Notes: generated from the sequence alone by a model not told the origin. 64,000 nt of DNA from Dimorphilus gyrociliatus (GCA_904063045.1 CAJFCJ010000013.1:1346156-1410155), one strand, 5' to 3'; counted from the first letter of the stretch, positions 26,845-36,300 are shown. A program made the numbers and translations.

Positions 26845-26991
26845 TTTTATTAAAAAGACGTATTTTTTTTATCAAATTTCATTTCCATTTTATTTAATAT
26901 TGAATATTTTCATTTTTAATTGTGAATTGAGGCTGATTGATTGACGCTTTAAAAATTTTTCATTGCATTAGTCTAAACCGTTGACTTCATT

Positions 26992-28807
26992 TCATGAGTA
27001 AAGAGATTCGTCCGAATTATCTGAGGATGATGGCCTATAATAAGGTACTGGCCTTTTCCTTGCGCTGTTTACCGATTATATTTAAGTTTTATAAGGTAAT
27101 GTCTATATCTGACTATTGACAATTAAGAAACGTACCTTATTGACAACAAATGTGCTTAACCAAACATGCAAAAAAAAATTTTAAATGATGAAAGGGGGAA
27201 AAAAAACTGTATACCAAAAATTTTGTGCCATTTTTTTCTTATTAACAAAGAAAATTGAAAATAATAGGATTAAACAAAATAATACCTCTTTACGACAAAG
27301 ACAAGCACCAGGATACCAAGAAAATAACATAAAAAAATGCAGAATAAAATTTTAACAGTACGGCATGCGTCAAAAATAAGTGATAACATAATCCATACTC
27401 ATTTCTTTATACTCGCCTTGTGATGCGACGTCTATCTAAATGTGAAGGCGAATGTGGCCGACGCCTAATAGAGGGTGACCTAGATCGGGATTTACTTTTA
27501 GAGCTCTTGTAGCTTTTTCTCGTATGCTTTGACTTCTTTCTTCGTTTCGATGTCTTATGACGTCTTAACGAAACAGAGAGAGATAAAGTATATTAATTTT
27601 TTTCAAAGACTGTTTTTGATTCATACTTTTTAGATTTATGTCTTGATCTTTTTGACTCGGATCGTCGTGATCTAGATCTAGAATAAGATCTGGATCTTGA
27701 CCTGTATCGAGATTGTGATCGGGATCGTGATTTAGATCTCGATCTAGATCTGGATCTAGAGTATGTTCTAGACCTCGACCTCGAAATTGACCTGTAGGAA
27801 GATCTTGAAGGAGACCTTGATCTGCTGTAGCTGCAGCTGACACTTTTGTTCCCATTTCTAAGTCTAGAAAGACGTCTGTCAAAAAGTATAATAATAGATT
27901 CATATAGAGTAAAATATGCAATTATTTATACTTCTTTGAACGACTTCGCGATCTGCTTCGACTTCTATTGTTATCACTTGGTACATCTCTGTAAATAAAT
28001 TTACGTATTAATATCCTAGTAATAAGTAACATATCTATTTTACTATCCACTCAAAAAACTGTTAGCAAAGCAAAAAAAGATCAATTAATTGTTACTGTAA
28101 TTAATTTTTGTACGGATTAGTCGCTGATGCACTACGGCTATCGATTTATTCGTAAAAAATGTATAAAACGGTAACGTCTTCAAATTTTGTTTATATTTTA
28201 ACCGAACAGCAGCTTTACTTACTTACCGAAAATAGTAACAGTCTGAAGTTTAAAAATAAATAAGAAAACGATAATAAACATTTAATTATTCAACAAATGT
28301 ATCTTACAACATAAATTGTAAGACGTCCAGCCAAAACCATAACAATTAAAATATATTGATAGATTTCGTAAAGAGAGTATACTACTAATAATAAAAATTA
28401 ATATTAACCGATCATTATTCATCTCTTCAGATAGAACATTTAACTTTCTCTTTGTCGAACTAATGAAATAGATAAAAAAATTAAAAACATTTCTTAAAAA
28501 TATTAAATAATAAGACTTAACCTTCCAGATACTGAGGAATTACAGCTTCTGACATCTTCTGAGTTATTATTCATTCGTTTATTATCTCTATTAGTTGAAG
28601 AAAAAGAACTTTAATACGTGTTCGGATAACAAAACCCAAAAAACAAACTTTTTTGAATATTCTTTTTGAGCGATTTCCGTCGATTTTCTGTATGATACAA
28701 ACATTGTATTAACTAAGAGAAAAAAATATTTGAATAAAAAGAAAAATTTTTTTTTAAATTACAAAAAGACGTACACGCACAGTTATACTTATCTGATAGT
28801 GCGCCAT
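26992..28807 (-). CDS. Small SR protein (241 aa, 8 exons) ending in an eMIC / SRRM3-4-type C-terminal domain
   Basis: Exons 28807-28789, 28712-28649, 28587-28522, 28459-28409, 27988-27932, 27875-27627, 27563-27417, 27064-26992 splice in frame (726 nt). RS repeats followed by RRRPHSPSHLDRRRITSARKRPVPYYRPSSS, close to recalled SRRM4 RRDSPSHLEARRITSARKRPIPYYRPSPS. Confidence 0.88.
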
Positions 28808-29862
28808 ATCGAAAAGTAATTTTGAATAAACAATATATTAGTTACGTGATTCAAAATTAAAATTAGTTTAAACCGTCCATCTCACCGCCTAATCAGGAAA
28901 ATTCCCGCGAAAAAAAGGACAGTATAGTCTAAAGTTACGAAAATCCGCAAGAACAATTAACTTGTAAGGATACGGTACATACATAACTTTAAGTGCATAT
29001 ACATAATAATTGTGGAAAATCCGTTTGGAAGGCATATTTGAAATATTATTTCAAGAAATTTATTTGTTTTACAAGTGGAGAAAAAAAAGTCGTAGTAGTA
29101 TTTAGCCAGGATGACAGATGATGGAGAAAAATAGAAAAATAAATATAAAGTGATAAATTAGAAAAAAAAAAACAAGAAAGAGCGTGTTCTTAATCACTTC
29201 AATTAATTTTCTCTCGTAAAAACCTTAAAACCTTTATGAGAGTCAATAGTTAAAATTTCAAAGAGAAAAGTTATTTGAAAAGTTAAAAATACAAAATTTT
29301 AAATTTAAGAAAATATCAATTAAAAGAACATCGCTTCAAGGAACACGCTAGTTCAAGTGTCTCTAAGAACAGGCATAAAATTCGAGTATGGTGGAAGCAT
29401 TCTTGGTTGTTTTAAAATAGTATATCGTTTTATCATTAATTTGATTATTTTCTTTTACATCAATCGTTTAGATTCCACCGTATAGGAATTAAAACATGCA
29501 AACAAACAACACTAATAATCATTCGTCATGCACCAATCATACTCTTCAGCACCATAATCTTTTTTAAAGTTCGCATACACACGCACACACATACACCATT
29601 CAACGATTAATCCAATCTTATTACCTCAAAACAATTGGTGCCTGCTATTTATAAGCGCAGATAATAGGAAAAAATAGTACTATTTAATGTCATCAAAATT
29701 AGTTTCATTAAATTTAAGTCTGAACGGAAAGAAATGATGAAACAAATAAGACAAAAGTTTTTGTGAACAATATATAGAGCATGCTTTTCTTTAATAGACG
29801 TTTTCTATGTGTTCAGATATACTTACAAAGTAACAGTCGATATTTCAGATCTTTGACTCTCA

Positions 29863-30788
29863 CTAATAATTATACAGCCTATTTATTATGTTTGAATAAA
29901 TGAAAATGTTGTAATTACCCAGATAAATTTTGTATAGCACTTGTTCTAGATGAATCAGAGTTATTTCCTTCGTTATCATTACTGAAGAATAAAAGAAATA
30001 CATAAGAATGAAGAACTGTTATAGAGATCACTTACTCTTTTCGTTTGTATGAAAAATAAGGCTGAAATACAAGTTGGTTGACTGGAGGATTTGAGTCTAC
30101 GTATCTTTGAAATATTCTGGCACTGTTAGAAAATGAGTTATTTAATCTAATCCAGAGTTTTCTGAATGGGGAATGAACATCATATTCCGCCTGTTGTAAT
30201 GCTTTAACACAACAAGACACGAAAAGTTCTATTAACGAGGGTTCCACAGGCTTCATACTGCTCAACTGCAGAGCAGCACCTGCCTGTAATCCTCTTAAGT
30301 AATACATTAATCAAAAGTTTCTGATGTCGCTTAAGTGAAATGAAAGAAGAAAGTTGCATATGGTGCACACTTACACTACTCGACCGCTAGGGTCTACAAC
30401 GACGTTGCCTTTAATCGCATTTTTGTTCTCCAAAAGTGCTTTGTATTTTGCTACCTTTTCTTTTTCTTCATTTTTTGACATTCTAAAATTATGAAATTTC
30501 TATATGAAATGCCTTTTAAGGAAAAATGTTATAAATAATGGCGGAATTTCTATTATTCTATCAAGTATCCTCTAAGGAAGTTGCTATCGAAATTCCGTCT
30601 AATTTTTATTTAAAATATAATTACTCGTTTCTTTTAAGTGATTTACAGAGATTGTCGCATTTATTTATGATACGCTTCGAGAGATGCTTTTCAAATATAG
30701 AAAGGAGAGCAGATTGATCAAATTTTTCTGAATGTATTTTGAGGAACATCTTGTGGTTATCACAATTTTTGAGATCACCGTTCTGCAT
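29863..30788 (-). CDS. Unidentified multi-exon gene, about 205 aa
   Basis: Five exons splice in frame (MQNGDLKNC...KRNE|MSKNEEKEK...DPSGRVV|GLQAGAALQ...FRKLWIRLNNSF...KRKD|NDNEG...LSG|LYNY*); no family recognised. Confidence 0.65.
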
Positions 30789-33395: not shown

Positions 33396-36300
33396 ATGAA
33401 CGTAAGTTTTTTTTTCAATACTTTTCTCACTTTAATTAATTTAATTCTTTCCATATAGAACTCAGATAATTGTAATGTTCATAGTGTTAATACATCTCTA
33501 GCCTGTCAATACATAAAATATACTCAATCTTGTATCTCGAATGATGGATATATCGATTATACTCAGTTTATTTACTGTGACTTTAATGGTTCAGCAAGAT
33601 TTTTAGGATTAGTTCTTGTTGTAAGTAACAGCTAAAAAAAATTATTATTTTTTCCTAATTAATTATTAATTATGATGATATCTCAATCACGTAGATATTA
33701 TGGTGGCTAGTTCTTTTCATTTCTCTTGCCGTTGTTGCGGATGATTTGTAAGTAATGATTTCATCTTTTTTTCATTATTTTTAATGCATTTTAAATTTAT
33801 AAATATTAAAAAGAAAGTTTATTTTATAAAAAAGTGAAATTTTATGTATAGATAAATATGTTTTATTATTCATATGTTAACAGTTTCTGTCCGTCTCTTG
33901 TTATTATATCAAAAACCTTGAAACTCAGCGATAACATTGCTGTAAGTCAGATAATATTGTTTAATCGTTTATTAAATCATTAGAATATAATCATTTTCTA
34001 CGACAGGGCGTAACATTATTAGCTTTTGGAAATGGTAAGTGAACATTAGTATCAATCAGTCATACTAACGTCGAATAGTGACGTTGATACGACGTCATAA
34101 ATTGACATTGATAAGATGCCAATTATTGAGAATTATTTATTTTCAGGAGCCCCAGATGTATTTTCATCCATATCAGCCGTAAAGAGTAGCCATAATGGTG
34201 ATATATCATTAGCTCTTTGCGCCCTAACAGGTGCTGGAGTCTTTGTAACAACGGTCGTTGCCGGCTCAGTTGCTTTTGCGAAACCTTTCTCCTGTATGCA
34301 AAGGCCTTTTTTGAGAGATACAATATTTTTTATTGCTGCAGCCTGTATGACTTTAGGATTGATATGGAATGGAAGAGTAACACTTATTTGGTCTTGCTGC
34401 TATCTTGGATTATACATATTTTATGTTATAGTTGTTATAGCGGCAAGGGCCATACGAAAAAAATGGCAGAGTACGCAGAAAGATCCTCTCTCAATTCAAA
34501 GCGATCCTTGTTAGTTAAATTTAAAATTTTTTTCCCTAAAATGTAATTGTCGTATAGATGGAAAACTTGAGATCTTCAAACAAATCTTAGAAATGATACA
34601 TCATTATTAGCTAATATTCTCACGTTGATGATGTATTAAATTACATTAGTCTCTTATGTTTCTATTTCAGTGGTAACGGCAGATGACGAAGTAACCTTCT
34701 CACAAATTACATTTAATGATACCTTCGTCCGTCAATCAGAGGCCGAGGGTCGTAGCGAAAATAATGATGACGTACCACTTTTGAGTGTGAAAGATCCTGA
34801 ACAGAAGGGATTCTTAATCTTGTTGATAAACGGTTTAAAAACTATTGATTACGAAGAGTTTAAAGAGAAGCCGATATATAAGAAAATTTATGATGTGGTT
34901 AAGTCACCGGCCTTATTCGCTTTTAAATTAACGACACCAGTTGTTGAGGAAGATAGTTGGAATAAACCTCTAAGCTGTTTACAATGCGTTATTGGAACAA
35001 CATTTATAATCTTTGCAGCAAATTACGAAGGTTTGTCATTACCTTAGGGTTCTATAATTAGAATTATTAATTATTATTACTTTGTTATATATAAAGTGGC
35101 ATTAACCTACCTTGGTGGAAGATTTCCGGTGTTTGTAATTTTTACAACAATTGGAATATTGTTGGCTGTCTTGGTGCACTTTACATCAACTCTCTCAGAG
35201 CCTCCTGTATATTATAAAGTAAGATAAATACCGCGTCATAAATTAGCATTATTAGACTATTTATCATTTTTTAACAATCTATATATACTTTTCTTAGGGT
35301 TTCTCTTATCTGGCCTTTATTGTGGCCATCTTATGGATTAATACAATTGCTAATGAAGTCGTGAATGCTCTTAGTGCAATTGGCATTTACATACATATAT
35401 CTCCGGGAATTCTTGGCTTGACTCTTCTGGCTTGGGGAAACTCTCTGGGAGACATGATAGCCGATATTGCTATGGCCAAGCAAGGTTTCCCAAGAACAGC
35501 TATATCAGCTTGCTTTGGTGGCCCTTTATTTAGTAAGCTCTCTTTTTTTTTTCTTCCTAAATCAGTATGAATATTTTATTTATTTCGATATTTAAAATCA
35601 TAAAGCGACAACAACTTTAAAGTTCACCTTTTCAGATCTGTTACTAGGCCTAGGTGTGCCTTTTCTAATCAAAGTGGTACGACATGGAACCCTGACGGTG
35701 AGTCATACAAATTTTCACCGATGACTAGCTGTCATGTAACGCTTTAAATAGAAAAAAATTACAGACATCTCCCAATATTAGCATGTAGAACAGAATAGGA
35801 GAAAATATTCTTTATAGTCATTGTATACTGTATAAAAAGTAAAAATCATAAGAACGACAGCAGGAAAATTATTGACCAATGGCGTTTTCCACTGAAATGC
35901 AATAGTAATAATAATAATCATAATCATAATTATAATTATAAGAGTAATACTAATATATTCTATAACCAGCTAGAAGCGATACAGAATTTATTTGTTTATT
36001 GCTTTGTATATCGCTAATCTGATATTTGGAAGATGGCATGCAATAAATAATTGAAATAGTTTTTAGAGTGGGGATCAATATTATATCTTTATAAACATAG
36101 ATTGATATCTTTTCATAAAAGTAAGAAACACCATATCTTACAAAAGGTGATATTGGGATCGCAATTTTATACTTTACTGCAGATGACTCATAAAGATGTT
36201 CTCAAAACTCTAGCTACCTATATACATTTCGCTTGTACTTCTTAGGTACATTAAGGTTATTAAAATGAAAGGAAACATAACCTTAAAAATTATTTATGAA

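Follow-up and report, generated by a model that had tools for sequence, protein, structure and literature searches.

A conserved 19-nt exon-like unit, a probable off-switch for eMIC production, within the intron that divides the eMIC-coding region of a Dimorphilus gyrociliatus gene

The window analysed here is a stretch of 64,000 nt of Dimorphilus gyrociliatus DNA (GCA_904063045.1, CAJFCJ010000013.1:1346156-1410155; G+C roughly 30%), which contains, on its minus strand, a gene encoding an eMIC domain; our subject is a 19-nt exon-like unit (27136-27154, all positions being those of the whole window) inside one intron of this gene. The exon upstream of that intron (27417-27563, minus; exon 3 below; joints 27563>27627 and 27417>27064) encodes the first part of the eMIC region (...SRSRSPSIRRRPHSPSHLDRRRIT-S) and alone matches positions 9-55 of the 67 positions of the Pfam SRRM_C profile (PF15230) with 29.8 bits, above the gathering cutoff of 27. 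The last coding exon (26992-27064, minus), which reads (S)ARKRPVPYYRPSSSDNSDESLYS followed by a stop, covers profile positions 57-67. Since the profile is interrupted at about position 56, with its two parts on the flanking exons, the intron at 27065-27416 (minus) splits the eMIC domain, in agreement with the original prediction, which was made from the sequence alone. This intron is a 352-nt, phase 2 GC-AG intron with the donor AAG/GCGAGT and the acceptor aaacag/CGC.

The RNA data consist of assembled Logan contigs from four runs, namely X1 and X2 (marine or coral metatranscriptomes) and X3 and X6 (coded organisms A and C). In all 4 of the 4 runs, the two eMIC exons are linked by the productive joint (27417>27064, with CT..GC ends when read as 27064>27417), which confirms the GC-AG intron, and the translation of the productive form ends in ...RRRITS/ARKRPVPYYRPSSSDNSDESLYS and a stop. 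U12-type identity of the 352-nt intron can be ruled out, as GCGAGT is not a suitable donor for that class. The remaining introns of the gene measure 61, 62, 56 and 63 nt, with one further intron of 420 nt, and their joints in the RNA contigs support the gene model; the median intron of D. gyrociliatus is 66 bp (PMC7854359). The intron sizes given in the original prediction (352 nt against about 60 nt for most others) therefore hold, except that the gene has a second long intron, of 420 nt. A six-frame translation of the window showed nothing convincing as a cwf21 motif.

The unit itself, CACATTTGTTGTCAATAAG, has a single copy in the window and is flanked by the signals of an exon. It is preceded by a candidate 3' splice site AAG (27155-27157, minus; acceptor AG at 27156-27155) that ends the hexamer gttaag, the same hexamer as at the confirmed acceptor of exon 27563. 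Further upstream a T-run (27178-27170) overlaps a TGCATG (27170-27165), which is followed by tttggttaag, and an AG-free zone of 50 nt, 76% of it pyrimidine, extends over 27157-27206 (minus). The UGC is located at -16 to -14 from the 19-nt exon, with 13 nt in between. Directly downstream lies an internal 5' splice site, AAG/GTACGT (27130-27135, minus). The combination of T-run, TGC, acceptor, 19-nt exon (27154-27136) and gtacgt that the original prediction described is thus found as described, with a T9 overlapping the TGCATG, and its description of the donor as strong also stands: scored with a generic 5' splice-site matrix with frequencies of the human consensus, this donor reaches 9.96 bits and is the strongest of the gene, compared to -1.5 to 2.9 bits for the five confirmed GT donors and 7.1 bits for the GC donor.

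Donors scoring at least as high as that of the unit occur at only 25 positions in 128 kb, counting both strands of the window (0.2 per kb). We defined the full signature as such a donor with an AG located 3-27 nt before it, together with a pyrimidine tract and with a TGC at a distance of 5-32 nt from this AG. Among 200,000 first-order simulated introns of 352 nt, 0.31% contained the full signature. One other match was found in the window, on the plus strand at 35675-35703 (site 35698), where it falls at the end of an ordinary exon (ttttcag/ATCTG...CCCTGACG/gtgagt) and does not correspond to a microexon. The 352-nt intron also contains 2 occurrences of GCATG (0.146 expected), one within the TGCATG upstream of the unit and the other within ACGCATG (27364-27370, minus), a GCAUG without UGC, 47-51 nt past the GC donor.

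Use of the internal donor was observed in one contig of run X6 (327 nt, depth 20), which carries the joint 27136>27064 with GT..AG ends and so connects the donor of the unit to the last exon, with the 71-nt sub-intron 27065-27135 (minus; 66 nt in the relative described below) spliced out, an intron size typical of this genome. Upstream of the unit, the contig keeps the intron sequence, 27155-27178 included, and extends into exon 3, so that 262 nt are retained. Its ends (27445 and 27044) are shared with a 57-nt contig that contains the productive joint (depth 14.4), and the pair looks like alternative paths through a single assembly bubble. X3 shares the haplotype of X6, and its branch containing the whole intron has a depth of 80.7 vs. 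85.9 for the productive joint; X1 contains an intron-bearing contig spanning 27162-27446. No contig of the four runs contains the joint 27417>27154, and no joint uses the AAG acceptor at 27155, which is weak evidence because contigs drop rare forms. Of the two junctions of a cassette exon, both of which the original prediction had proposed to look for, only 27136>27064 is therefore present in the RNA contigs, in X6, where the upstream 262 nt are kept. In metagenome contigs of the JGI, a scan for productive or cassette junctions (the end of exon 3, 0-30 nt, and the start of the last exon) gave 0 matches, as did a scan with a conserved 24-mer.

We assessed conservation in a distant relative. A search with the terminal exon of the convergent neighbour led to one Logan protein, 72% identical, on four contigs, L001-L004 (SRR23372228, SRR23372229, SRR23372216 and SRR31984834), which also carry the eMIC gene and allowed the whole gene to be aligned. 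Contamination of these contigs from the window's own species is ruled out by an identity of 56% over all introns. The four small introns are 40-48% identical, and the eMIC-coding exon is 73% identical, with 10/24 third codon positions shared. Compared to these values, the core block 27128-27178 (minus) is identical in 49 of 52 columns, and the unit together with GTACGTTT in 27 of 27; the 19 nt of the unit are 19/19 identical in L001-L004, as is the donor. The longest identical run in any intron, of 30 nt (AAGCACATTTGTTGTCAATAAGGTACGTTT), lies within this core and covers the AAG, the 19-nt exon and GTACGTTT; when the intron columns were shuffled 20,000 times, a run of this length was reached 0 times. 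The U-run and UGCAUG (27165-27178, minus) contain a 12-nt identical run, TTTTTTTGCATG, the AAG is conserved, and a long AG-free, pyrimidine-rich stretch precedes the acceptor in the relative as well. The context of the GC donor, AAGGCGAGTATAA, is also identical, and the donor stays GC, and ACGCATG forms a 7-nt identical run in diverged flanks, the intron having about eight short islands of this kind. The nucleotide conservation of the unit and its flanks thus goes beyond the neutral expectation, and the check in a related species proposed in the original prediction came out in favour of the unit as a splicing element, with the unit, both splice sites, the U-run and the UGCAUG identical or nearly so in introns that are 56% identical. 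The shifted reading frame that inclusion of the unit would open is not conserved, the stop being located elsewhere in the relative, which indicates selection on an RNA element rather than on a peptide. Organism A has 9 differences in the 63 nt downstream of the unit vs. at most 1 in 27128-27178 (Fisher p = 0.02).

Some further observations concern the same alignments. In organisms A and C, the segment 27179-27276 (minus) is replaced by 83 unalignable letters, with both sides aligning at about 90%. In the last coding exon (26995-27063, minus), 19/23 third codon positions are the same in the relative, vs. the 10/24 in the preceding eMIC exon; judging from these counts, the last exon may be under additional constraint at the RNA level, for example from splicing signals or from antisense overlap with the 3' end of the neighbour. 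Homologues of the neighbouring AAA_28 gene led to two more contigs, L005 and L006, neither of which carries an eMIC exon.

Removal of 27135-27065 deletes the sole acceptor that places ARKRPVPYYRP in frame, and the complete eMIC domain would therefore no longer be encoded by a transcript in which the internal donor is used. Two such transcripts are possible. In the retained form, which keeps the upstream 262 nt, read-through from exon 3 into the intron would give RRRITRRV and then an in-frame TAA (27409-27407), which is conserved in the relative and located 271 nt ahead of the 27136/27064 junction. In the cassette form, inclusion of the 19 nt would shift the frame to ...RRRITSTFVVNKRKEKASTLL and a stop at 27037-27035, with the loss of ARKRPVPYYRP, and these translations are the ones that had been predicted. 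The stop of the cassette form lies in the last exon, and exon-junction-dependent decay is therefore not expected for it; a stop more than about 50 nt before a later junction, the usual rule for premature stops, is present in the retained form only. By their predicted translations, 'poison' in its usual sense is a description that suits the retained form and not the cassette form. Of the label 'poison' as it was originally applied to the 19-nt exon, the predicted destruction of the eMIC C-terminus through use of the donor can be kept, whereas the sense of nonsense-mediated decay cannot, given a cassette stop in the last exon. Frame preservation is usual among microexons that depend on eMIC, and the 19-nt unit does not preserve the frame.

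We consider it probable that the 19-nt unit is a selected, exon-like off-switch that limits eMIC production through competition between splice sites. In the productive splice, the conserved, weak GC donor (27416) is joined to the terminal acceptor 352 nt away, probably in competition with the near-consensus GT donor of the unit, which is only 71 nt (66 nt in the relative) from the same acceptor, a distance that would correspond to the intron size best removed in a genome of introns of about 60 nt (PMC7854359). Once the internal donor is used, the acceptor before ARKRPVPYYRP would be lost and eMIC would be off. Two outcomes may follow. In one, the upstream 262 nt stay in the transcript, as in the form seen in X6, which would end in RRRITRRV and might be subject to decay or nuclear detention. 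In the other, which is absent from the contigs, the AAG at 27155 would also be used and the resulting cassette form would carry the frameshift STFVVNKRKEKASTLL and a stop; because this stop lies in the last exon, the mRNA would be expected to be stable. The conserved U-run, the UGCAUG next to the acceptor and the GCAUG after the GC donor may point to an RNA-binding protein that acts in trans on this choice.

Several points weigh against such a switch. The internal-donor joint was found in a single contig, in which the short side of the joint is just 21 nt, and X3 and X6, whose status as RNA is only a guess, come from a lineage that is about 10% diverged from the window. Contig depths are a crude measure, and contigs lose rare forms. 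An exact genomic deletion of 71 bp in organism C would mimic the 27136>27064 joint, but this is unlikely, given that the 71 nt are still present in organism A, which has the same haplotype. Retention of the 352-nt intron may, furthermore, be non-specific, because long introns are more often retained in D. gyrociliatus in general (PMC7854359) and because X1 keeps a short one: a contig of X1 retains the 56-nt intron 27876-27931 (minus) at a depth of 10.4, vs. 5.5 for the spliced joint. Unspliced RNA or DNA is thus common in the X1 library, which limits what can be read from retention elsewhere.

Among the other explanations, a chance cryptic exon without function could appeal to the abundance of AG and GT dinucleotides in AT-rich introns and by the fact that the site was picked after the sequence had been seen. 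This is highly improbable: the strength of the donor, the rarity of the signature in simulated introns, the perfect run within diverged introns (not reached by shuffling) and the use of the donor in RNA together show that the unit is a real splicing element under selection and not a chance cryptic site. Only slightly less remote is the proposal that the conserved block serves another purpose, as an enhancer in a long intron or as part of the transcript of the convergent plus-strand neighbour. Open-chromatin peaks do occur within unusually long introns of D. gyrociliatus (PMC7854359), and the end of the neighbour gene is only about 290 nt away; however, splice signals mark the edges of the block, splicing from its donor takes place on the minus strand, the neighbour has its own ATTAAA at 26849, right after its stop, and the block shows neither an Rfam match nor structure. 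It is also rather unlikely, although less so, that the unit acts as a decoy that recruits U1 and U2AF, is rarely spliced in and stalls the flanking sites, such that the intron is detained in nuclear transcripts; this would be one of three candidates for what sets the switch, beside the two discussed below. Intron-containing contigs match the depth of the productive form in X3 and X1, no contig shows the cassette joint, and the unit is highly conserved with a shifted peptide that is not. Conserved decoy exons are known inside retained introns of mammals. The internal donor is, however, actually spliced to the last exon in X6, and the retention may reflect mere intron length (PMC7854359) or the unspliced RNA or DNA that the retained 56-nt intron of X1 suggests.

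The remaining two explanations differ in what would control the unit. In the feedback loop that the original prediction put forward, eMIC would bind the UGC and promote the unit, and high eMIC would thereby lower the amount of full-length eMIC. The architecture is that of an eMIC target, with 19 nt, a UGC at -16 to -14, a 50-nt AG-free zone, a weak AAG acceptor and a strong donor (features in PMC8797185), all of them conserved in the relative; in the sole non-productive spliced form observed, the downstream intron was spliced out ahead of the upstream one, an order reported for most SRRM4-dependent microexons (10.1101/2022.08.15.503947); and absence of the cassette joint is expected in samples that are probably from whole animals, if inclusion requires neuronal eMIC. 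Still, the 27417>27154 joint is absent from the four runs, the unit shifts the frame where eMIC microexons mostly preserve it, activation of the acceptor would leave the productive output unchanged if the internal donor commits the transcript earlier, and the UGC is embedded in a conserved UGCAUG, with the second island being a GCAUG without UGC. We regard self-regulation as unlikely on balance, and no self-regulatory exon or loop of eMIC is described in the literature searched; if true, a microexon would be the means by which the master activator of neuronal microexons keeps itself in check, in an ultraconserved homeostatic loop, and the eMIC programme would have its first described case of self-targeting. 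A possible, although tentative, alternative is a tissue gate similar to that of flies, in which the internal donor and the unit are the default, and a neuronal protein of the Rbfox type (two GCAUG) or the Elav type (U-runs) blocks the unit and aids the GC donor. Outside vertebrates, eMIC is restricted post-transcriptionally, with Elav and Fne promoting the skipping of a poison exon in an equivalent intron in flies (PMC8797185). In the present gene, UGCAUG lies just upstream of the unit and GCAUG shortly after the GC donor, both are conserved and their number exceeds expectation, the combination of the strongest donor with an optimal 71-nt intron makes default use plausible, and the depth of the non-productive contigs is about equal to that of the productive ones. 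Rbfox sites upstream of an exon repress it, and downstream sites enhance. Applied to both GCAUG sites, this rule would favour the productive splice in cells that express Rbfox. The ACGCATG is, however, just one of the conserved islands of the intron, and U-runs are commonplace in AT-rich introns and hence uninformative. Given that the UGC belongs to a longer conserved motif, UGCAUG, and that the other conserved GCAUG occurs without it, the motifs suggest that a tissue switch like that of the fly is at least as likely as self-feedback.

The putative off-switch can be compared to several known systems. In the fly gene Srrm234 (CG7971), a proximal poison or alternative terminal exon lies between eMIC-coding exons, and neuronal Elav and Fne promote its skipping (Torres-Mendez et al. 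2022, PMC8797185). Both cases have an alternative exon in an intron between two eMIC-coding exons, the use of which blocks translation of the distal eMIC exon, and both would limit eMIC output post-transcriptionally in an animal outside the vertebrates; U-rich motifs lie close by in each. Unlike the fly exon, the 19-nt unit has no poly(A) signal of its own, with neither AATAAA nor ATTAAA present on the minus strand within 27416-27065, and thus does not resemble a transcript-ending proximal exon; the conserved GC productive donor, the retention of the upstream part of the intron and the UGC/UGCAUG motifs are further differences, and the likeness is one of arrangement. Ultraconserved poison exons and unproductive splicing are known from the genes of SR and SR-related proteins (Lareau et al. 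2007, as cited in 10.64898/2026.09.14.751627). They share with the present case an RS-rich splicing regulator, a non-coding alternative exon that is more conserved than the gene's own third codon positions, and truncation upon inclusion, whereas the unit, at 19 nt, is far below the typical length of a poison exon, its cassette stop is in the last exon, and a junction downstream of the stop exists in the retained form only. Neural microexons controlled by eMIC (SRRM3/4) are alike in their length (3-27 nt), in the UGC near the 3' splice site and the long AG-free pyrimidine tract (features in PMC8797185), in the weak acceptor, in the strong donor (the pattern of mammals) and in a downstream-intron-first intermediate. 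They add a few residues instead of shifting the frame, and here the host is the regulator's own gene. Mammalian decoy exons are similar in being conserved exon-like units in introns that are abundantly retained, here in assemblies, with the cassette form rare, whereas the donor of the unit is seen joined to the last exon in one data set at least. The arrangement as a whole would fall under known kinds, namely the control of an SR-related regulator by unproductive splicing and the gating of eMIC as in the fly.

The dosage of eMIC matters; in flies, both its loss and its misexpression lead to neurological or developmental defects (PMC8797185). Outside vertebrates, no gate on eMIC output other than the Elav-controlled poison exon of the fly has yet been dissected. 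If the unit acts as proposed, a second gate in a spiralian, structurally unlike that of the fly, would suggest that regulated splicing within the eMIC-coding region is old and general. Its parts would be a unit the size of a microexon, the weak, conserved GC donor and the UGCAUG motifs; the element itself, of about 50 nt, is sharply bounded by conservation.

Other classes of element were considered for the conserved block. An RNA structure or RNA gene is ruled out by a fold z-score of 0.17, a consensus fold of -2.3 kcal/mol, the lack of covariation and the lack of an Rfam family; the Rfam scan of the region yielded no family, only sub-threshold miRNA noise in the RS exon. A dispersed repeat is ruled out because the block is single-copy in the window. 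Recursive splicing is likewise ruled out, as the junction of exon 3 with the unit (AAG/CACATT) does not regenerate a donor and the observed intermediate has the wrong order.

A second exon-like unit was noticed in the 420-nt intron (28408-27989). It consists of 16 nt at 28227-28242 (minus) and reads cttcag/ACTGTTACTATTTTCG/gtaagtaag; no joint to it was found among the contigs of the four runs. At the corresponding place in the relative (L001 7742-7757), the pyrimidine tract, TTCAG and GGTAAGTAA are kept, with only 9/16 of the exon letters. Its inclusion would lead to ...NNDRLLLFSRCTK and a premature stop ahead of three further junctions, which is the classical pattern of a poison exon.

Searches of protein sequences with the 48-aa peptide of exon 3 gave no candidate when word-indexed, and one unrelated repeat protein only when exhaustive. 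Such searches are blind to isoform-specific peptides, as splice bubbles interrupt the assembled contigs. In run X2, contig 9 ends in 9 unplaced letters past 28688 that are the same as the last letters of an upstream exon (...AAAATTTATCTGG/gtaatt, ending at 29919; minus). This 9-letter match, at 29919-29928 and 28687-28688, implies a GT-AG intron of 1,231 nt and an in-frame fusion, ...AIQNLSG/KSTEIAQ..., that would tie the eMIC exons to the upstream gene (30481-29919), which is without a Pfam match. The upstream exons are also kept in the relative, but the fusion frame there runs into a stop.

The best conserved non-coding block of the locus is 28760-28890 (minus), with 93% identity to the relative overall and 100% over 28876-28832; it contains ATGGCGCAC. 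In the window, the ATG of this sequence opens an upstream open reading frame of 23 codons, the TGA of which overlaps the ATG of MNNNSEDV (AATGA). In the relative, the exon that follows the block is 40 nt long, vs. 39 nt in the window, and the eMIC open reading frame is in frame with this first ATG.

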